The notes under the pieces were generated by a model. It saw only the letters and a list, made by a program, of their open reading frames with translations, did not search any database and was not told where the DNA came from. A stretch of DNA of 64,000 bases, from contig CM121341.1 of the NCBI GenBank assembly GCA_051530055.1, forward strand, positions 9,278,784 through 9,342,783, in the 5' to 3' direction. Both the position numbers and the translations under genes were made by a program. Position 1 is the stretch's first letter; the number at the start of each line of letters is the position of its first letter. Source of the DNA: Neoechinorhynchus agilis. Taxonomy: Eukaryota > Animalia > Acanthocephala. Of the stretch, positions 15,734 through 63,749 are shown one piece after another.

Positions 15734-15801
15734 TTTAATAAATAATCAATTAATAATTATTCTTTTGGTATAATTTTTTATTAAAAACCTTTCCAAGCTG
15801 A

Positions 15802-15888
15802 TCGAGTTCATCATCAGTTTGCTTGTAAGTTTTCTCAACTGTGAATGGGAGTTAAAAAAACTAACAAGCAAACTGTTGATGAACTCGA
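15802..15888. repeat. Inverted pair of decayed hammerhead/pLTR units
   Basis: tcgagttcatcatcagtttgcttgt ... acaagcaaactgttgatgaactcga. Confidence 0.7.
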
Positions 15889-16473
15889 CGAGGTTCGAAA
15901 CATTTTAATAAAAAAATATTTACCAGGTGAAGACTTAAAGAATAACCCCAGTACCTCACATATCGACATTTTTATATTATTTGTTTTCACAATTTTTATA
16001 ATTACGATTCTTAACCTCGGGTTATTGCATTCAATCGATACCGACAGATGAATTAATAAGGCTCCTGCCACAAAATTTGGATGCATTTTAAAGCATCTAT
16101 TAAGCAAGAGTAATATAATTAACTCTGATGTGAGAGCGGACATTGATTAGTGGCGTGGGGAAAGAATTTGTTTGATGGCCTTCGCCAGTGAATTCGCGCA
16201 CTTAAATTAGCCTGTCGAAAAATCTTTATATTAAATTCTTTTCTCGATAAGACGCTTTTATATTGCCTTTAATTAAATCAACAGGGGATTAGATACTGTA
16301 TATTATTTTACCTGTATTTTCTGATAAATGAGTGTCGGTTATTTTCTTTGAAAAATATAAGCAAACCAGAGTTAATATTCTACAAAAACAGGCATTTTTT
16401 AATTCTTTTTTTAAAATGGTACAAAAAGTATTGACAAGTAATATGGAGTTTTTGTTTTTAAAGCAAGCGCCAT

Positions 16474-47159: not shown

Positions 47160-48480
47160 GCGAATTTTCAAGGTCTCAGCCTCCTCCCCAAGCATCTAAA
47201 AATGGACGTGAGCCTTGACTCGAGTGCGCAGGACCGTCGATTCCCGAGGTGATGTTTCACCCCCTGCGCAAAAGACAAATAGAGATTCCTCGTCGGAAAT
47301 CCTAGAGAATGATTGCTCTTGTTCCCTTCCATTGTGTCCTCCATATCAATGAGCAGAGCCTCTTTTATCAACCTGCTCTGTTGGTTCCTCTCGGCCATCA
47401 TTGTAAACGCGTTTTCAAAATCGATTCTGTGGTCGTTGTTGATAGCGTGATTGAACCTCATGTTTCTCTACTCTTTTTCGCATCCCCTATTTTGTCTGTC
47501 CAACATTGACTTGGTCGAAATCCTTACAGGTTATCGAATATACCACGCATCTCCGTAAGCTGTGATGGTCTCACTTTCAGTATCCCGCTCAGTTTGAGTC
47601 CTGACGAATAGTAGGGAACCAGAGTCGTCGAACTCGGTTTTCTAGAAATGGGTGTCAGCATGTTACCCATCCTCGTTGAGATGAACTGAACTCGAATGAA
47701 TTTCTTCTTTAAACCGTCTCTAACATCACTTTTCGCCGTGGTCCTCGCTCGAGCCAATGCCTTCCTTATAGACTATGTCGCGTACTCAAGGTCCTGAAGT
47801 TTTACAAAGATGCTCTCAATGTCCTTCCTCACCCTTTGATCATTGTTTACGATCTTTATGACTCGCTTGAGGATGTTTGCTGCAGCATTGATTTTATACT
47901 TGGTAGGTCCGTGGCGGGTTTACTTGGCTTATTGAATAACGACGTCGTGATCAAAGTTCCTTGTTGTTGTATCAACACATCTAAGAAGCTGATCCTTCCC
48001 TGCTCGTCCTTTGGGGTGATGCTCCACTTTATCAACGGATTTATTCCGTTCAATTGATCCCCTAACTTCATTTTAATAAGATCCTTGTTAGTCACTGCAA
48101 ACACATCGTCAACGTACCTCCACCACGCCACAATCACAGGAAACCTCAATCTCAGTTGCTTTTCATATTCGATCATATAGATGTTGGCCAACGCTGGTCC
48201 TAACGGTGATCCCATTACAAATCCGTTCGTCTGGTCGTAGAATTTTCCTTCGAATGAGAACCCAGACGATCAATCAGTACTGACCAATCATCCATATCCA
48301 GCTTGGGATCCAGACATCGTGCGGCCAAGATAGTTGCTTCCTTTATCGGTACGTTCGTAAATAGTGCCGTGAATCTGCCGTCCAAAGGAAGTTGTTGCGA
48401 GGATCGAATATTCCGATTGCTTCAACGAATGGCGGGCCATCTTTAACGTATGATGCTGGAGTTTCCATGTTATCCCGAAT
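47160..48480 (-). mobile_element. Penelope-like element remnant with decayed hammerhead at 47162-47191
   Basis: MGSPLGPALANIYM, WWRYVDDVFAV, ISFLDV, RLIKEALLI, then UUGGGGA-G-GAGG(CUGAGA)CCUU-GAAA-AUU-C. Confidence 0.85.
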
Positions 48481-49369: not shown

Positions 49370-52290
49370 CCAATTGATGGCGTTATGTGCACGTGAACTA
49401 TAATGTTAGTAATGCTAAGTTAATAAAATTATCTGACCTACGGGTCAGTTCGAACTGTTGGTGACTCATATAAATGGTGTAAACGGATTTTGATTATTCT
49501 TCGTGGTTGAAGTAGAGATGTTTAGTAAGTGGAAGATTTGGGAGGGCACATGGTAGCGTTCATCGAGTTGAGTGTGTTTTCGAGCTGAAATTTATGCAGA
49601 TTGGCAAAAGGCTGAGATCTGTGAAGGCCTAGGGCATTTTTGATCTCGCTCCACCAGGAACGATTAGGGGATGACGGTAGTTTGGAAAAAGGAAGGTTTT
49701 GCTAGTGTGAAGAAGGCGCTCAGTGAATCTCTTGTGGAGTTCTGGGTAATCGGGATGTCGGGAGCGAAAGGACTTTTTCAAGGTGAAAACCATGGTGGAT
49801 CACGATTCGACATACGAATCATTTTCCGAAAGAAAGACATGCACATGCAATGGACTAAGGTATTGTCAATGCCGCCGTGGCTTTAGACGGGCCGTTGCTG
49901 TATATAGAACTTCGGATTCCGCATAGAGCATCACTTACCTTGTTGAAGGAGTGAGAGTGATGCTCACGTTTATCCCAGACTGGGAAAGGGTCGGAGGACT
50001 GTCGCTTCGGAGGAACAATTGGTCTAAGGAGGATGGTACAGTGATCCGAGGTCGCGACAGGTGGAAGTTTAACGGGAGCGGAATATTTGGCTATATTGGT
50101 AAAGATTTTATCTAGTGTGTCGATGAACCACACGAGGGGAAGTTTACTAGTTGTAAGAGATCAGAGAGTGACGGTGGAGCAGGGAGACGGTTGAAGTCTC
50201 ATCGAATCATGAAGTGTTGAGAATTTAACGATAGTTTGTCATTAATTAAGGTATCGATTTGTTCAGATGTTGCGATGGGAGTTGAGGCAGGGGGGCGATA
50301 AACACCGGTGACGGTCATTTCAAGGCTGCCGTTACGAAGAGAAAGAGAGAGTTGAAGGTGAACCCATTCGAGGTGTTCTGATATAAAATAGTGACGGGTG
50401 GAGATGGTGTATGGTAAGGAGGACTTCAAGTAAATAGAGACGCCTCCTCCAGAACGATCATCTCTAGTTAGGTGAAATGAGGAGAATCCGGGGATGATGG
50501 CAGTGTTCTTATTAAATTGGGAGCCAGGTTTCCGTAATGACGAGAATGTCGGCTTTGGTGGCCGTAGCGACTGAACAGCTCGTCGATTTTTGGTAGGATG
50601 CTACGAATATTGGTATATGATTGTAGGGAACGGCTGTTTAGGAGGGTTGCTCAGCAAGGAAATGGGTTGGAGGGGCGAGATGGGTGTCAAGTCGGGTGAA
50701 GTTGTGGTTGCCTGTTCATCTAGAGTGCAAGTGGATTGTTCAAGGCCATCCGAAATTTTTTGGGTTGGGCCTCTGACAGAGTGAAAGTGAAGTTAGGTAT
50801 GGCTGCGATGTCTTTGTTTGAGTCACTGAGCCGGGTTTCTGCGGTGACTAGTATGTCTGAGGTGTGACGATTTTCTGATAAGGGATGGAAAACAGTTGTA
50901 TATCTAATTTCTGCGAAGGAACAGCGGGTTCCTTTGGTGGTATCCAAAAATTTACGGCAGCAGAAGGCGTGTGTTGAACGGACGATAACTAATTGACTGT
51001 CGGGCTGGAAATATCCGGTAAGAGAGGGGTGATTTTAGTAAAAGAAAGCGTTTGAAGATGTAGACAGAGGCAGTGTCACGAAGGTGAAAACTAACTTTTA
51101 GAAGGCGTGGACGAGAGTCAGCTGGATTATTTGATAGGATGCGGTGAACAGATACAGGCGCAGGAAGGTTGTTATAAGGGAAGAGCGTACGGGTAATTTC
51201 GTTGAGATGTAGCAGATTGTGTTTCAACGCATTGAAACGGCTAGAAATTGGACATTCAGGAACTTCAGGAATACCCAAGACGAAGATATCGTGCGATGGA
51301 TCATATTTCTCATGTTTGTGTTGGGCGTGGCCAGGGAGAAGGCCGTATGTGTTAGGAACAACCCTCGATTTGTTAGGCGGACGATTTTGTGGTGTGCGAG
51401 AAGATTTCGGTGAGGGAGGTGTTATTTCCGGTAACCTCTGCTGAGAGGGAGGCTAAAGGGTAGACTTGATTGAGAAGTGAGCGTAGTCTTGAAAGGACGG
51501 AAGTCGACGAGCGGGATAAAACGGAGCTGCGCGGAGGGTGGATGTGAGGAAGGTAATATGAGTCTGAACCGGAGGTTTGAGAATCGGGATTGAGTTAAGT
51601 CGAGGGTCCAGGGACGATTTATCATTTCCAGGTGTGTATGGCATGTTTGGGTTGTCACAAGATAGTTGGTTGGCCTTGTACGGAAACAGGTCATGCTCTT
51701 TGTCATTAATTAGATTTGAAATTAACGGGCTTCTGGGAGCTGGTAAGGGGTCCTTGACAATTGTTTGGTTGTGTTTTGGGGATATACTCAGTTGAGTGGG
51801 ATGTGTTGTGACGGGTGAAACGGGAGGAAAGAGATCGGGGTGGGGGTTGATTCTGGCGATGGGCCGTTGTTGGGCATCAGATCGGGAGAAATCTGTGTGA
51901 TGGCTTCTGTTGTGATGTTCAAAGGCATGGCAGAAGGTGATGTTTCGAGGTTAGCGTCGATCGCGGTCGAAAGTGCCCTGTTGATAACTCCAAAAGGCAT
52001 TCGATCTGGTGCCAATTTGATCAGCAGCTTGGCGCAGCAGAACCCACAGACAAAGAACGGGCAAGGCTCTGGGATGTGCGTTGGGGCGATGAGGGTTGTT
52101 ATCGAGCACCCTTGGCACGAGTAGGTGATCCTCTTGGAGGCTGGGTTACGGGACTTTTTATCAGCCATGAAGGTGTTTACAATAAACTCGACGTATTGCT
52201 TGTAAGTTTTTAAATATGCCGATAATCGATTTGATGCACGTAAATGTGTAGATCGATTTGATACACATAGAGGTGTTTGACGAGAGAGAG
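49370..52290 (-). mobile_element. CR1/L2-like LINE (Cys-rich ORF1 + APE), RT missing
   Basis: ORF1 SCQGC..CPFFVCGFC and PRLLKVSF; APE DILVTAETRL, VTGVYRPP, LDKIFTN..VATSDHCTILL. Confidence 0.8.
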
Positions 52291-52299
52291 AGAACGTTA

Positions 52300-54909
52300 A
52301 GTGAAGAACGAAAATGCTCGACGCTCACAATTTTGATTGATTTAAATTATTTCGATTTCGACGAACGCCAACGTCTTCATCTCAAAGATCTTGGTGATAT
52401 CTTTACAAATCATCATTAGAAATATCAGTAAAGATGTTCTCATCATCGATTGAGCTAAAAGTGAAGAACAAAAATGCTCGACGCTCACAATTTTGATTGA
52501 TTTAAATTATTTCGATTTCAACGAACATTAACGTCTTCATCTCAGAGATCTTGGTGATATCTTTACAAATCATCATTAGAAATATCAGTAAAGATGTTCT
52601 CATCATCGATTGAGAAAAAAGTGATGAACAAAAATGCTCGACGCTCACAATTTTGATTGATTTAAATTATTTTGATTTCAACGAACATAAACGTCTTCAT
52701 CTCAGAGATCTTGGTGATATCTTTACAAATCATCATTAGAAATATCAGTAAAGATGTTTTCATCATCGATTGAGAAAAAAGTGATGAACAAAAATGTTCG
52801 ACGCTCACAATTTTGATTGATTTAAATTATTTAGATTTCAACGAACATTAACGTCTTCATCTCAGAGATCTTGGTGATATCTTTACAAATCATCATTAGA
52901 AATATCAGTAAAGATGTTCTCATCATCGATTGAGCAAAAAGTGAAGAACAAAAATGCCCGACGCTCACAATTTTGATCGATTTAAATTATTTCGATTACA
53001 ACTGACATTAACGTCTTCATCTCAGAGATCTTGGTGATATCTTTACAAATCATCATTAGAAATATCAGTAAAGATGTTCTCATCATCGATTGAGAAAAAA
53101 GTGATGAACAAAAATGCTCGACGCTCACAATTTTGATTGATTTAAATTATTTTGATTTCAACGAACATAAACGTCTTCATCTCAGAGATCTTGGTGATAT
53201 CTTTACAAATCATCATTAGAAATATCAGTAAAGATGTTCTCATCATCGATTGAGAAAAAGTGAAGAACAAAAATGCTCGACGCTCACAATTTTGATTGAT
53301 TTAAATTATTTTGATTTCAACGAACATAAACGTCTTCATCTCAGAGATCTTGGTGATATCTTTACAAATCATCATTAGAAATATCAGTAAAGATGTTCTC
53401 ATCATCGATTGAGAAAAAAGTGATGAACAAAAATGCCCGACGCTCACAATTTTGATTGATTTAAATTATTTTGATTTCAACGGACATTAACGTCTTCATC
53501 TCAGAGATCTTGGTGATATCTTTACAAATCATCATTAGAAATATCAGTAAAGATGTTCTCATCATCGATTGAGAAAAAAGTGATGAACAAAAATGCTCGA
53601 CGCTCACAATTTTGATTGATTTAAATTATTTTGATTTCAACGAACATTAACGTCTTCATCTCAGAGATCTTGGTGATATCTTTACAAATCATCATTAGAA
53701 ATATCAGTAAAGATGTTCTCATCATCGATTGAGAAAAAAGTGATGAACAAAAATGCTCGACGCTCACAATTTTGATTGATTTAAATTATTTTGATTTCAA
53801 CGAACATAAACGTCTTCATCTCAGAGATCTTGGTGATATCTTTACAAATCATCATTAGAAATATCAGTAAAGATGTTCTCATCATCGATTGAGCAAAAAG
53901 TGATGAACAAGAATGCTCGACGCTCACAATTTTGATTGATTTAAATTATTTCGATTTCAACGAACATTAACGTCTTCATCTCAGAGATCTTGGTGATATC
54001 TTTACAAATCATCATTGAAATATCAGTAAAGATGTTCTCATCATCGATTGAGCAAAAAGTGAAGAACAAAAATGCTCGACGCTCACAATTTTGATTGATT
54101 TAAATTATTTTGATTTCAACGAACATAAACGTCTTCATCTCAGAGATCTTGGTGATATCTTTACAAATCATCATTAGAAATATCAGTAAAGATGTTCTCA
54201 TCATCGATTGAGCAAAAAGTGAAGAACAAAAATGCCCGACGCTCACAATTTTGATCGATTTAAATTATTTCGATTTCAACGAACATTAACGTCTTCATCT
54301 CAGAGATCTTGGTGATATCTTTACAAATCATCATTAGAAATATCAGTAAAGATGTTCTCATCATCGATTGAGCAAAAAGTGATGAACAAGAATGCTCGAC
54401 GCTCACAATTTTGATTGATTTAAATTATTTTGATTTCAACGAACATTAACGTCTTCATCTCAGAGATCTTGGTGATATCTTTACAAATCATCATTAGAAA
54501 TATCAGTAAAGATGTTCTCATCATCGATTGAGAAAAAAGTGATGAACAAAAATGCTCGACGCTCACAATTTTGATTGATTTAAATTGTTTCGATCTCAAC
54601 GAATATTAACGTCTTCATCTCAGAGATCTTGGTGATATCTTTACAAATCATCATTCGAAATATCAGTAAAGATGTTCTCATCATCGATTGAGCAAAAAGT
54701 GAAGAACAAAAATGCCCGACGCTCACAATTTTGATCGATTTAAATTATTTTGATTTCAACGAACATAAACGTCTTCATCTCAGAGATCTTGGTGATATCT
54801 TTACAAATCATCATTAGAAATATCAGTAAAGATGTTCTCATCTTCGATGGAGTAAAAAGTGAAGAACAAAAATGCCCGACGCCTACAATTTTGATTGATT
54901 TAAATTATT
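52300..54909. repeat. 160-bp tandem array, 16 full units plus a partial
   Basis: Unit starts at about 52301, 52461, 52621, 52781, 52941, 53101 and onward (159-160 bp period). Confidence 0.98.
52379..54848 (-). ncRNA. SNORD24: 16 tandem box C/D snoRNA genes (~72 nt each), U24/SNORD24-like
   Basis: Each unit on the minus strand reads AUC-G-AUGAUGA(C)-GAACAUCUUUA-CUGA(D')-UAUUUCUA-AUGAUGA(C')-UUUGUAAAGAU-AUCACCAAGAUCU-CUGA(D)-GAU. The D guide is complementary to the conserved LSU rRNA AGAUCUUGGUGGU. Lower coordinates of the copies: 52379, 52539, 52699, 52859, 53019, 53179, 53338, 53498, 53658, 53818, 53978, 54137, 54297, 54457, 54617, 54777. Confidence 0.88.
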
Positions 54910-55949
54910 AAACATTCATTGGCGAATACAACCACTAGAGATCAACAAAAAATTTGAATTGAACATTCTCAGAAAAGACAATTTCGGAATACAATTGCCT
55001 GCATCGTATTCTCCGCCGTGAACTGTAAGAAACGAAAAGTCAAAATTTGAAAAATTCTGAGCACCTTACTAGCAGCAATCGATAGAAATGAAAATGGAAT
55101 TTATTGATTGTTGTTGTGACGTTCCTAACAATCTCGCAAGACTGTCTGAATGTACACCTTTTTCTGTTGGAGTTTAACGAAAGGAGTGGTAATTTTGGAA
55201 GACACTCAATGAATCATCAACTCCATTCAAAGAAATGTTAGCAAATTCATAATTAAAAATTGCCAATAAATAATGTTCGGCCTTAGAGCAAATCGGATAT
55301 TTCTATCCAACTGAAATTAGGCCGAGGACAGTAACCAAAATAAACCCGGCATCGAACCAAAAAGCGGTCTATTTAAGGAATTTCCTTGAAACGATTCGGT
55401 AGAAATGCTTGTTAAAAAACGAAAGAAACAAAAAACGTAATACGCCGGATTTTTTGTTGATTGAGAAAATGGAGTTGAATTTATTGATTCCCTTTTTCAC
55501 GAATATTCGTACGTTTCGTCGGATTTCTACAAATCTAAAAAATATGTCATTCGAGGTCGAATCTTGAGATGAGATTAAACTCAGAATATAGCCATCCTGA
55601 CATACCTTTCAGAACTGAGGACGTCCGACGAGGCATACCAGATATCGGGAATTAATATAGAATCAATCTCTATTTTCTCAATCACCAAACAAAATATGAA
55701 CTGTAATTCTAGAACGAAAATAACTTAGAATTTTTTTGGCGTTCAAATCAGTCAGTATTGTCCACTTAAGTTTAGAAGGCTAAATAGATCGTGTTGCTTT
55801 CAATTGCAAACAAAGAATCGAAGCGGCAATCTTGGCCACTGACTCGCCTATGGTTATCCCGTATTCTGCAACTTATCCAAAACTCAAATCCGTCATCTTG
55901 AAATGTTTCAAGAAGAAGAGCTTCTAAAATTTGTACAGTTGATTTCCCC

Positions 55950-58130
55950 CTCTCTCATGATTGCCTTGATCCTATTTTGTATAAATCCTCACACCTGCCT
56001 ATACCTCCGCTCCTTTTTCCCTGCTGCCCAATCTTCTTGGATATCATAACTTGAAATTAGCCTGAGGAAAGACCAAACTCACAAGCTTTCTTGTAAACAA
56101 TAACCATTAATTTGCCCACCCCAACGGACATAACAAGACCTGATATTCCCACCGGAGAGGAGGGATGGCGAATGGGTGACGAGGCTGAGATCATCGGCAT
56201 AAAAGAAAAGTTTTGACTGAGAGGAGAGGTTTGAGGTCGTTTAGGAAAAGACTAAAGAGAAGTGGTGATAGCACAGCACCTTGAGGTACGCCTTTGGTGA
56301 GCGATTGTCTGATAGAATAGGTAGAATGGCAGTGATTGTATTGTTTGTGATCGTGAGGATAAGATTCGAGCCAACGGATCTGTCACGAATTAAGGTAAAA
56401 GACGGAGCAGGCCAGGAGAAGGAGTGAATCGTTCACGGAGTCGAAAGCTTTCGATAAATAAAGTTGATTGAGACGGTTGACGTGGGAGGGAATATTGTCG
56501 AGGTCAGGTAGGAGCTTGTCATAAACGCAGAGTGGGGCATCAGGTGCAGAAAAGTTGTGTCGGAAGCCAAATTTTAGATGTGATAGCTCTTCATTGCGAA
56601 GTGAAAATATGCGAGATTTAAAACATTTTTTGATGATTTTTGAAGGAGCGGCGGATAGGATGGATATTGGACGGAATGATTCGGCTGAAATAGGATGTCC
56701 TTTGTTTAAAAGGGAAAACTTTAGCAGTTATAAGGCATGAGGGATAGATGACATATAAAAAGCTGAAGTTTATAATGTGGGTAAGAGGGTCGATGAGTTC
56801 GTGAATAATGCAGCGAAGAGCTAGTTTGAGAATTCGGAATGAGAGGACGAATTTCCAGGCAATTTATTGAGATACCTTAGTACTTGATATGATGAAACTA
56901 AGGGGAGTATCGGCGAGTAGATAAGGGTTTCAGGTGTGGGCGTGAAAAATTGTGTGGTGAATGATGTGGAGCAGCGATTGTAAATTTAGCCAGGATAGAG
57001 GTTCTGAATACTGGAATTTAGAACCTATTTTAGTTCAGTAGAAGATAAATTAAGGAAGCGATTCGGGTGGCGTAAACCAAGAGAGTCCTTGACGGCCCGC
57101 CACCATGTTGAATTGCCACTTGAACGAGTTTTGGCGGAAAGGAAGTTTTTGCGGGCGATAAGTATTTTTTATTAGAGCGATTTGTAAATGGGGAAAGTCT
57201 GGGTGGTTATTGCAGTGGGCATCAGAAGATCGCTTTTGAAGAAGTTTATCCATGGTGGGTCGCGCTTGGAGATCCTAATGAATTGCTTGGGAATTGCAGA
57301 AGTTAGGGATTTTTTATGAATGAGATTACGAAGGGCATGGCTAAGGAAGGGTCATTTGTGTTGTCAAAGTGAAATGTGCGAATAGTAGAATTTAACAATT
57401 ATGTAAAATTGTGCATGTGATGATCACGTTTATCACAGACGGTTAAACAGGGAGATTTTATACGTTGAGGTGGGGTCAAGGGAGTAATAAGGGCAGAAGC
57501 GTGGTCAGAGGCCGTGGGGCGCTGAGTACATAGGCGATTGAGTGGGCGTCGATATTTGTGAACACTATGTCCAGGTGAGCGTCAAGACGAGTTGAGAAGT
57601 TAATAAGTTGAAACAACTCGGAAAATGGTAGAAGAGGAAATAGAATGTTGGAGTCCCCTGCAATTAAGAAATGGTGCCAATTTGTGGAGTTTTGAGCTCC
57701 ATCATAGAGTCAACTTGGAGAAAGGAGGACTCAGGACGAGAATCCGTAGGGCGATAGACGCTAGCAATGAGGAATTCTCTAAGGCCGTTTCACAGAGCAA
57801 CTATGAAATGGACTGCGATAAATTCTAAATCGGGGTTTTGTAGAGAGGGAAGGGAATTTTGGATTTCGGGAAATCGAGGGTGGAGGCGAGGGAGATTGGG
57901 GTTGCATTGTCCTTTGCGGGTGGTGGGTTAAGGGAGGAACCGTTACGGGATGCCGACAAATAACGGTTGATTATCCCAAAGAGAGAAGTCCGGAGGCGAC
58001 TCGAAAATTTGATTTGGGATGAGTGAATGGTAATGATAGAAATGAGTTTAGGGTAGAGACTTTGCATAGATCAACTACGGTTGGATGTGCCGATTTATGG
58101 TGATTTTGATAGTTATTTACTTAATTCGGG
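55950..58130 (-). mobile_element. Degenerate APE-type LINE (endonuclease remnant + RT)
   Basis: KAFDSVN, TKGVPQGAVLSPLLF, FYADDL on the minus strand; many stops. Confidence 0.8.
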
Positions 58131-58149: not shown

Positions 58150-59130
58150 TGAAATGGCTAAGAGATTGACCTTTGTGGTTATTCGGGTGCCGGTAGAGTT
58201 GCACGTAATCATAGAAACTAGGAAGTCGGGGGAGAAGTCTTGCATCGAGCGAGATACAAGACTTGAACAAGGCGTCAGAGGCAATGGAGGATCTTTCCAT
58301 GTTCTCCAGAGTTCAGCTGGACAAGCTAGAAGACTGCCCGGGAATAGACAAGGCTCACATCACAATGTTTCGGAACGCGATGCGCCCGCGCGGGAGCACG
58401 GCATTTGAAGACTCGGCAAAGATGTCGGCTGAAGTGGCTATTCAGGACCTCTTCCACAATTCCAATTGGACACGGCTACTGGAGAAGGTTCCATATGACC
58501 AGCAGGCTGCGGCCACTCGCGCACTGTCTTGACGGCGGACTTTGTGTTATTATATAATGCCATAACGGGTGTGACAATGATCGGCGGAACTCCATACTCC
58601 TTTAAGATACCGTCAATCATCGTTCGATTTACCGAATCGAAAGCTCGACGGAAATCAACAAATACCAGCGTCACATCCGTTTGATGAATTCGTGCCTTCT
58701 CGAGGATCCTCCTCAAAGCAAATATGTGCTCCGTGGTGCCTCGACCTTTCCTGAAGCCGTTCTGTTCAATTCTTAGAAACGGTTCGAGGATTGGCTGAAT
58801 TCGGCGTGTCAAAATGCTACTGAAAAGTTTTGCCGTGTTGGACATCAAGGATATATGTCTGTAGTCCTCCACCTTTGTCGAGCAGCATTTCTTGGGGATC
58901 ATTGTTAAATGCGCCGTTTGCCAGATTTGAGGTACTGAGCCATCATTCATTAATCCATAAGATGGAAAAATTGCACACTCAACAAGCATTAAAGTTCCGC
59001 TTGGACGACAAAGCAATCAAAAACGTTTGGACTTCCTGAACTATATCCGACCTAATCTTTTATTGTAGAAGTCGACCGCCCGACCAACGTCTGAATTTCC
59101 TAACTGTATTTCTCAACGCCCAAAAGAAGC
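58150..59130 (-). mobile_element. RTE-like LINE RT fragment
   Basis: MIPKK..DYRHISLMSNTAKLF, EQNGFRKGRGTTEHIFALRRI, FVDFRRAFDSVNR. Confidence 0.85.
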
Positions 59131-61013: not shown

Positions 61014-62572
61014 ACAGAGATATCTGATGCCTTTGCGGCGAAAAGCCTGCAACAGAGGCGGACTCGCAGGATCTCAAAATCAAGAAACGCAGATTTATTT
61101 GTCCTTAATGGACGTTTGATCAAACTTAAAGACCAAAATTTACTACAACTTTCCTATGGCACGAACGCAAGAAAAACGTTCATCTATAACATTCCATACA
61201 ACCGATTAATCTCAAAAGAAACTAATTAACTTCACTGCAATACAATTGAAAAAACGACGTTTTGAAATAATTTCGAGAAATATTACTTACAATCAGACAT
61301 TTTTAACCGGTTAGAAGGTTCTACCATCGGCTCCCAAATCGCTCGATTCATCGGAGAACAAAAAGGAACGATGGGAGGAACACAAATGCAACGATAGAAA
61401 GCGGGCAACGATTTGGAAAGTACGAAAAAACAGAAGAATTCACGGTCTCTGTAATGATTTGGCGCACGCTCAAATTTTTGTCGTCATTTTTTTATCAAAA
61501 AAATTAATTTGTGAAAAGTTGCCGTCTAGTCTTTATCATTAACATCATTCTGAATTAACAACGATTTTATTCGTTTTCTTAAAAATTACGTAAAAAACTG
61601 TTTAAATGTTCAACATTGAACCGACGGATATTTGCAGGTTTTCTCCGCTTAGATCGCTTATCTCAGTTCATAAATTGGAGCGTAATCGGAAATAAACAAT
61701 AAAGTTTTATCCCGATCACATCTATCGATTGAGGCGTTTCAGCGGAGATTGGCAAACCGCCATCCAATGTTTTGTAAAGGTTCACTTACCCTCGGAGAGA
61801 AATTGCTCTCACTCTCCTAAGCTCGAATACAAAACCTCATCTCCTGGAAAAGGATGTCCAACCCGAATAACTTCGTGTCCAGTCAACATTTCAAAACTTA
61901 AATCGGAAATGGCCACCGGTCATACCTAAACAATCATTATCAAACGGTTACCCGATGGCTTGTTCAAACAAAAATGACGACCTAAAAAAGAATCAATCAT
62001 CTCATCTTTGGAACAGCGAGGTTCTATTTAACAACCCAAAAATGACTCTCACCCTTTCACGACTTTTTAAATTTCAAACTCCCCAAGATCTTTGCAATCT
62101 GGAAGGACTTTATAGAGGAAAAAGACTGGAGTTTGAATCACTCTTCTACTGTAAAATCAAGTTTCTTCTAAACTCTCGGATAAGTTCGAGATCATTTATG
62201 TTCCCAACAGTCCTGTGCGTTTAACTGTTTTGAGGGGCTCATTGGTTTTTGGTGTGGTTTCCATGGATGAGATTTTTTAACAACTTTGTTACTTTCATTC
62301 GTCTCCGGACGCTTCTTCATTCCTTCCTTTGATTACTTAATTCCCAGTGACGGACTGGTATAATGACAAAAAAGAAAATCTTCATTCTCGATCTTTCGCA
62401 GTCTTGAATCTATCAAAAGGAGTTTGGAGATGTGAAGTGAATGTTAAAGTACCGACATTGAAGTGTGTTAGTAAGTTTGACTAATTTACGTTAATTTATA
62501 GAGACATTGAACCGAAAGAACCTTAAAGTGAAACTGCCTTTATTGCATTGTTTCGAGTGAGAGAAAAGAAAA

Positions 62573-62875
62573 ATGTTTGCTTCTCGTTCGGAATACGACC
62601 GTGGCGTTAATACATTCTCTCCTGAAGGTCGTCTTTTTCAAGTTGAATACGCGATCGAAGCAATTAAATTTGGGTCGACTGCGATTGCGATTAGAACTGA
62701 TGAAGGAGTTGTACTGAGCACTGAGAAACGAATTCAATCAAGGCTCATTGAACCTGGAAGTGTTGAGAAGATTGCCGAAATCGATCATCATTGTGCTTGT
62801 GCTTTATCTGGACTCATTGCTGATGGGAAAACGCTGGTGGATCGGGCAAGAGTGGAAGCACAAAATCACTGGTTT
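62573..62875 (+). CDS. PSMA5: Proteasome subunit alpha type-5, first coding segment (residues 1-101, ending ...NHWF)
   Basis: [40 protein letters not shown]...[10 protein letters not shown]. Confidence 0.95.
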
Positions 62876-63749
62876 AAAAAAAGGCGGTAATGTTGATCTC
62901 AAGTCATAAAGGCCACAACCTTTTTTTAATTTTTTTAAATACACACATTTTTGAAATTTTTTAACGTTTTTAATTATGTTGAAAAGATAATTCATTGTTA
63001 TTTGTCGATAGGAGAGATAAATGAAATTAAGATTTTATTGGATATTTCGATCCACTATCTCGGATCTTCTTCAGCGATCGTTTGCAAGTTTGATCCAACT
63101 TCGTAAACACTTGCAAACAATCGCTAAAGAAGATCCGAAATAGTGGATCGAAATATCCAATTAAATCTTAATTTCATTTATCTCTCCTGTTTTTAATTAT
63201 TTTTTCCGCAGTTTATATCATAAAGAAAATCGAAAATGATTAAATTGTTTATGACGGTGAAAAATTTAAAGGAAATTTATTAAATTCGATATTTCGGAAG
63301 CACACAATCTTTACGCATTTCTAGAAAATTGTTTCTAAAGTTGTTTTTCGATGTGAGATTTTTTATAAATCCGAAAACAGATAATAGCGGATTTAATAAA
63401 ATTCCTTGAAATTAAATCAGCCATAAAACAAACATGAATTTCAAAAAAAAATTATTAGTATATTTTTAGACCAAAAGGTTTTATTCTTTTTATTAAAGAA
63501 AGATTTGTAAACCACACAATTTTGAGATTTTTTAACGTTTTTTTATTATTTGTTCCGCAGTTTAATTTCTATGAAATGTTCTATTTTATATCATAAAGAA
63601 TAAATTATCAGTATTATTTTAGACAAAAAATGTTTTATTATTTTTAATGAAGAAACATCGCAGATTAACTTTGAATGCGTGATTGATTTATCAATTTTGT
63701 ACGGATTTGAACATTTTTTCGTCATTGTTATCAACATGACCTCCTCGGT
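62876..63749. mobile_element. MITE-like insertion / non-canonical intervening sequence in PSMA5
   Basis: Imperfect sub-terminal inverted repeats 62882-62902 and 63725-63745 (17/21 match), an internal ~80-bp-arm hairpin at 63011-63187, and internal AT-rich direct repeats. Confidence 0.7.

Follow-up and report, generated by a model that had tools for sequence, protein, structure and literature searches.

A 2.6-kb stretch of Neoechinorhynchus agilis DNA with the look of a satellite consists of 16 small guide RNA genes arranged head to tail. Each encodes, on the minus strand, a box C/D snoRNA of the kind known as U24 or SNORD24 in vertebrates and snR24 in yeast. The tandem array is seen together with its boxes, a match to the SNORD24 family, pairing of the guide with its target, lower variability within the snoRNA than around it and the presence of the snoRNA sequence in RNA libraries. 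We read the whole, with a probability of roughly 0.6, as a multi-copy cluster of one snoRNA, the counterpart of U24/SNORD24/snR24, that is polycistronically expressed. Two parts of this reading carry their own weight. That the array copies are working U24-type genes for methylation of the C1437-equivalent is very probable; that they are expressed by a polycistronic route is put forward tentatively, as close to an even bet.

The window analysed here is the whole stretch of DNA, 64 kb in length, and all coordinates are positions within it. Tandem Repeats Finder places the array at 52299-54909 on the minus strand, with a period of 160, 16.3 copies, 96% matches and no indels (score 4788), and alignment of the units resolves it into 16 full 160-bp units followed by a truncated 17th spacer. 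On the minus strand there are 16 occurrences of a 21-mer that spans guide, box D and stem, at distances of 159-160 bp, where shuffling predicts 0; none was found in the 64-kb window beyond the array. The tandem of 16 copies of 160 bp proposed in the earlier note is thus borne out by both the repeat finder and the 21-mer count.

One snoRNA of 74 nt, terminal stem included, occupies each unit. Read along the minus strand, it comprises AUGAUGA (box C), 11 nt, CUGA (box D'), 8 nt, AUGAUGA (box C'), 24 nt and CUGA (box D). A terminal stem, AUC/GAU, closes the snoRNA and could be extended, with an interruption, into the flanks (UCU..AUC with GAU..AGA). The combination of box C, box D and AUC/GAU stem that characterizes the box C/D class is present in 14 of the 16 copies, and the internal boxes of the class, in the form CUGA-8 nt-AUGAUGA, in every one. 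The same note had seen a complete C/D architecture in all units; this holds for 14 copies, in which all four boxes are intact, and fails for the first and the last.

The first array copy (54776..54849, minus strand) has AAGAUGA for box C, and the last (52378..52451, minus strand) has UUGA for box D and the lowest Rfam score, 33.8 bits. Box mutations are confined to these two terminal copies, and such damage at both edges is as expected for a homogenised array. A representative intact U24-type copy lies at 52538..52611 on the minus strand (74 nt; SNORD24 at 37.9 bits, E 4e-4, model positions 1-76). Six further intact copies follow on the same strand at 52698-52771, 52858-52931, 53018-53091, 53178-53251, 53337-53410 and 53497-53570, and another six at 53657-53730, 53817-53890, 54136-54209, 54296-54369, 54456-54529 and 54616-54689. 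The copy at 53977-54049, also on the minus strand, has a 1-nt deletion directly before box C'. Beyond the last copy, its trailer and the 17th spacer occupy 52299..52377 (minus strand; spacer motif at 52309-52333). The junction was read: the 17th spacer ends 10 nt short of the expected snoRNA start, where a different repeated element begins.

The family to which the array RNA belongs was identified with Rfam. Under permissive settings, SNORD24 (RF00069) ranks top of 4227 families for all 16 copies, and the alignments run end to end. Scores range from 33.8 to 39.6 bits, typically 37.9 (E 1.5e-4 to 3.6e-3), against a gathering cut-off of 41 bits; the next family scores more than 6 bits lower and is not significant. 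At gathering level no family is called in the whole window, the array copies all lying below 41 bits. The match rests on the boxes and the D guide. At the 3' end the SNORD24 consensus of Rfam reads ACCACCAAGAUCgCUGA and the array RNA AUCACCAAGAUCUCUGA, the D guide differing from the consensus at 2 of 17 positions. Agreement with yeast is closer. A published qPCR primer for yeast SNR24 (PMC4848094) reverse-complements to ...UUAUCACCAAGAUCUCUGA, and the last 18 nt of the array RNA through box D (UAUCACCAAGAUCUCUGA) are identical to the snR24 end recovered from that primer. In yeast, snR24 lies in an intron of ASC1 and guides the methylation of positions 1437, 1449 and 1450 in 25S rRNA (PMC4848094).

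The D guide has a single clear partner in rRNA. As a source of rRNA, metagenome contigs were scanned with a 27-mer covering both U24 sites; the scan also served to test the 27-mer. At least 120 loci were recovered. Four long ones proved, by Rfam, to be complete eukaryotic units (SSU-5.8S-LSU), and in each the 27-mer falls within the LSU. As loci picked by the 27-mer, they speak for a widespread target but not for a universal one. On all four LSU rRNAs, the 13-nt D guide pairs with AGAUCUUGGUGGU through 12 Watson-Crick pairs and 1 G-U pair. Each of the four complete rDNA units contains exactly one site with zero mismatches, every other site having at least 2, and the pairing was matched by 1 of 300 shuffled guides. 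The site falls at about nt 1430, inside Rfam-confirmed LSU rRNA.

The position of the guide specifies the nucleotide within this target. The fifth guide base from box D is a G and faces the C of GAUC, which is C1437 of yeast 25S rRNA. The antisense element of at least 10 nt upstream of box D and the fifth-position rule that mark the class are therefore both found, as read on the LSU rRNA of other eukaryotes. When the C of GAUC is numbered 1437, an A and a G 12 and 13 bases onward become 1449 and 1450. In yeast 25S rRNA we take these two positions to be an A and a G, and the numbering fits the second pair of sites of snR24. Much of what the earlier note had stated about the snoRNA survives these comparisons. 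The vertebrate U24 ending that it quoted, ACCACCAAGAUCgCUGA, is indeed the Rfam SNORD24 consensus. Its count of 12 Watson-Crick pairs and one G-U was reproduced on the four Rfam-confirmed LSU rRNAs, and its use of the D+5 rule to reach the C of GAUC proved correct. Its assignment to U24 is upheld by the top family for 16 of 16 copies, the D guide identical to that of yeast and the GAUC target. The check that it proposed against the SNORD24 model came out in part: the model is the best family for all 16 copies, with scores (33.8-39.6 bits) that stay under the cut-off of 41.

The second guide of U24 is missing. The canonical D' guide, AUAUUUGCU in the Rfam consensus, pairs with AGCAAAUAU; the array RNA is without it and has ACAUCUUUA in its place, the 11 nt from box C to box D' being GAACAUCUUUA. 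The array snoRNA thus lacks a D' guide to the neighbouring site in LSU rRNA (yeast 1449/1450), and the D' guide that it does have is without an rRNA match. Against SSU, 5.8S and LSU rRNA this guide finds chance-level partners only, the best of which have a mismatch and G-U pairs; on the four rDNA units its pairing was equalled by 55-154 of 300 shuffles, and no exact 10- or 11-mer complement occurs in the 120 rDNA loci (460 kb). In the minimum-energy fold, the D' stretch instead pairs over 8 bp with GUAAAGAU, downstream of box C', a fold-back that is thermodynamically not unusual. Folds of the snoRNA, of the spacer and of the snoRNA with its flanks are no better than those of shuffled sequences (z +0.46, -0.33 and +0.95, respectively), and so do not point to a hairpin for processing within the spacer. 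The array RNA is of a known kind, one that carries the U24 D guide and falls short of both the Rfam cut-off and the second guide. It is probably a one-guide variant of U24, with a D' side that is orphan or structural.

Substitutions among the units are unevenly distributed. In the inner 14 units, 2 of 74 snoRNA columns are variable compared with 15 of 87 spacer columns (Fisher p=0.0035), and minor-allele cells number 3 in the snoRNA and 42 in the spacer. The split is 7/27 for the trailer, 7/59 for the 59 nt upstream and 2/74 for the snoRNA; the difference between upstream part and trailer is not significant (p=0.12-0.22). The copies being 96% identical, they offer no covariation, and the argument for selection rests on a handful of substitutions. 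Several spacer variants recur in units that are not neighbours, a distribution compatible with conversion or unequal exchange.

This pattern bears on whether the array is in use at all. It could be a satellite that was seeded by a snoRNA gene and is now unused, the working U24 residing elsewhere, for example in an intron of a ribosomal-protein gene. Retroelement debris without a host gene surrounds the array, its edge copies are damaged, and the RNA signal over it is low and strandless. Satellite-like repeats with snoRNA-like parts of unclear function also have a precedent in Schistosoma mansoni (PMC8490949). Decay of this kind is, however, at odds with the fact that 14 of 16 copies retain all four boxes and a complete guide, with the avoidance of the snoRNA body by substitutions (p=0.0035) and with the presence of the snoRNA sequence in RNA libraries. 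We regard an abandoned satellite as quite improbable.

The genomic surroundings offer no protein-coding host for the array within the window. Its flanks are retroelement remains, in agreement with the earlier remark that no such host was visible. Reverse-transcriptase fragments lie on both sides in this retroelement-rich region, a clear RVT_1 fragment at 58441-59016 (minus strand; E 6e-14) and another at 47859-48215 (minus strand; E 3e-4). The nearest ordinary gene encodes a proteasome alpha subunit and starts at 62573, on the strand opposite to the array; its first exon (62573-62887, plus strand) contains Proteasome_A_N and Proteasome domains. At its downstream end the array is abutted by a repeated, transcribed element (51788..52298, minus strand), which begins exactly at the array end (junction CTTCACTT/AACGTTCTCTCTC) and cuts the 17th unit. 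This element contains a 27-bp repeat in 1.9 copies at 52225-52276 and a 126-aa open reading frame from 52168 with no Pfam hit; a weak RVT_1 match lies farther along from it. Its RNA depth of 50-200, combined with many variant letters, marks it as a multi-copy family.

A permissive Rfam scan of the window found no other convincing snoRNA. A snoR113-like match at 61454-61547 on the minus strand (26 bits, E 0.035) contains AUGAUGU but is without CUGA, and is probably due to chance. Separately, 15792-15925 is matched on both strands by several unrelated models (RUF6-5, MIR837 and mir-1468) with scores far short of their cut-offs, a pattern suggestive of a long, AT-rich hairpin or of an inverted repeat. 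Outside the array, the window contains no match to the spacer motif and so offers no other small-RNA genes for comparison of the motif. A look-up of an open reading frame of the array in public assemblies for further copies returned none on record.

RNA data from the same organism include sequence of the array and of its upstream flank. The snoRNA sequence is present in eight RNA-labelled runs. All 4 sampled snoRNA words were present in four runs, and none of the sampled words in one run that may be a small-RNA library. Four further runs yielded a 190-nt contig colinear over 54500-54689, which extends from one snoRNA across the spacer into the start of the next. Contigs of 188-434 nt lead from the first unit into unique flank for about 400 nt (54874-55280); in the four runs the flank contigs cover 54874-55280, 54904-55263, 54925-55236 and 55001-55188. 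Depth is zero at 55340-55536 in 4 of 4 runs. These four runs, whose contigs collapse repeats, gave no splice joints within the array, and no mature species of about 70 nt is found among the assembled RNA contigs. As assembled contigs, these data are strandless and of low depth, with repeats collapsed and depth not equivalent to expression, and low-level DNA carry-over may be the source of the signal.

In RNA contigs the unique flank at 54910..55340 (strand unassigned) runs on from the first unit. It may be either the leader of a precursor read from the minus strand or, on the plus strand, the 3' end of an RNA. Positions 55371-55378 read, on the minus strand, as a TATA-like TTAAATAG, which lies about 35 nt beyond the covered stretch and would fit a start near 55.34 kb. 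An AATAAA at 55265-55270 on the plus strand lies where the flank RNA contigs stop. The two signals give opposite readings of one transcript: judged by motif, the AATAAA would fit an antisense, polyadenylated plus-strand RNA as well as the TATA-like element would fit a minus-strand start. Farther upstream, 55537-55733 and 55931-56127 reach very high depth in the RNA runs (70-450), with many loose ends at 55665 and 55697, a pattern suggestive of dispersed-repeat fragments that many transcripts have in common.

We propose that the array arose through local unequal crossing-over and that its copies would be kept alike by conversion together with selection on the snoRNA bodies, copies at the edges decaying. 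One Pol II precursor would start a few hundred nucleotides upstream, at about 55.3 kb, and run through the array. It would then be cut and trimmed to the ends protected by the snoRNP, as are the polycistronic snoRNAs of plants, yeast and trypanosomatids. As a class, box C/D snoRNAs are stable, measure about 70-100 nt and associate with fibrillarin, Nop56, Nop58 and Snu13. The mature RNA of about 72-74 nt would assemble with the fibrillarin snoRNP core, and its D guide would pair with AGAUCUUGGUGGU in the LSU rRNA to direct 2'-O-methylation of the C of GAUC (yeast 25S C1437). With the D' guide folded by 8 bp onto the stretch downstream of box C', it would probably act as a single-guide snoRNA. 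A polycistronic route is favoured by contigs that bridge a spacer or connect the flank with the first unit, by the shortness of the spacers and by the lack of splice joints. A polycistronic read-through transcript made by Pol III is unlikely, given runs of T5 and T6 in every spacer.

In the main rival, every 160-bp unit would be an independent gene. Its promoter, of the snRNA type or otherwise compact, would occupy the 59 nt that precede the snoRNA, and the mature 5' end would be the capped start. The array would then resemble the tandem arrays of U1/U2, spliced-leader or 5S genes. Consistent with such a promoter, a smaller share of columns is variable in the upstream part of the spacer (7/59) than in the trailer (7/27); the upstream part also contains an AT-rich TTTAAAT at about -55 and, at -43 to -30, the only GC-rich block of the spacer, GTGAGCGTCGAGC. 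The difference in variability is nevertheless not significant (p=0.12-0.22), and colinear contigs that lead from the flank to the first unit, or from one snoRNA to the next over a spacer, are not required by independent short genes. We consider separate promoters unlikely.

A second alternative retains a shared transcript and places each snoRNA in an intron of a non-coding host, as in the SNORD116/115, rat Bsr and Drosophila Uhg genes. The introns, of about 114 nt, would run from AAAATT/GTGAGC to GAUGAAG/ACG and separate exons of 46 nt. A good GTGAG donor is indeed available in all 16 spacers, as GTAGG in the first, and an AG follows 4 nt past the snoRNA. An acceptor 4 nt from the end of the snoRNA, however, leaves no room for a branch point, and the pyrimidine runs lie upstream of the snoRNA rather than before the AG. 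Moreover, the four runs contain no joints in the array but unspliced colinear contigs, although contigs in which repeats are collapsed speak only weakly for or against splicing. Intronic release from a non-coding host is in our view very unlikely, and we retain the unspliced polycistronic precursor as the working model. The suggestion made earlier of unusual polycistronic processing or of dosage amplification is plausible from sequence.

The RNA itself is ordinary; its layout is unusual for an animal. Animal rRNA-guide snoRNAs are almost always single intronic genes, and vertebrate U24/SNORD24 is a gene in an intron of RPL7A. The array RNA has the class, size, box order and predicted LSU target of U24/SNORD24/snR24. 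Whereas U24/snR24 is a single intronic gene, the array comprises 16 copies in tandem that lie in no protein-coding host.

Plants, yeast, trypanosomatids and Euglena are known to have snoRNA genes that are tandem or polycistronic; in these, same-strand snoRNAs are likewise separated by short spacers and lack a coding host. A precursor holding two snoRNAs, as in polycistronic clusters, is suggested here by one RNA contig, which is strandless. Such clusters, however, usually mix different snoRNAs and are repeated as a whole mixed cluster, whereas here one snoRNA is repeated alone. To our knowledge, polycistronic snoRNA clusters of the plant, yeast, trypanosomatid or Euglena type have not been described in animals.

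Large homogeneous tandem repeats of one C/D snoRNA are found likewise in SNORD115/116, SNORD113/114 and rat Bsr. In the eutherian arrays, each intron of a spliced non-coding host contains one orphan guide, and the units are imprinted and of kilobase scale, whereas the array described here has a canonical rRNA target, a 160-bp unit and no splicing seen in assembled contigs. A 2024 review describes large animal tandem C/D arrays as eutherian-specific, imprinted orphan families, together with rat Bsr, shaped in eutherians by non-allelic recombination and conversion, and adds that understudied genomes may harbour more such arrays (PMC11028025). The W-elements of Schistosoma mansoni are satellite-like, with predicted SNORD59-like parts whose function was left open (PMC8490949). 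They too are a tandem repeat of a parasitic worm, with a monomer that has C and D boxes and a match to a snoRNA family. Their monomers are about 700 bp and linked to the sex chromosome, whereas in the array the snoRNA takes up almost half of each unit and has a verified, conserved guide. In the literature searched, no relevant work on acanthocephalan or rotifer snoRNAs turned up.

The guide that sits in this array of 160-bp units is a canonical and widely conserved one. If the copies are expressed, snoRNA dosage would be set by the copy number of the array rather than by a host gene, and such repeats would need to be annotated as genes instead of being masked as satellites. Expression would also make the array a compact natural system for the release of snoRNAs from repeated precursors in an animal. 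A broader possibility, somewhat doubtful yet worth stating, is that much of this animal's housekeeping rRNA-guide repertoire has moved from host-gene introns to dedicated, homogenised, satellite-like arrays that are expressed in the manner of trypanosomatids and Euglena. Should introns in this genome prove to be unusual, such a move might be connected with changes in how this lineage builds or splices its introns.
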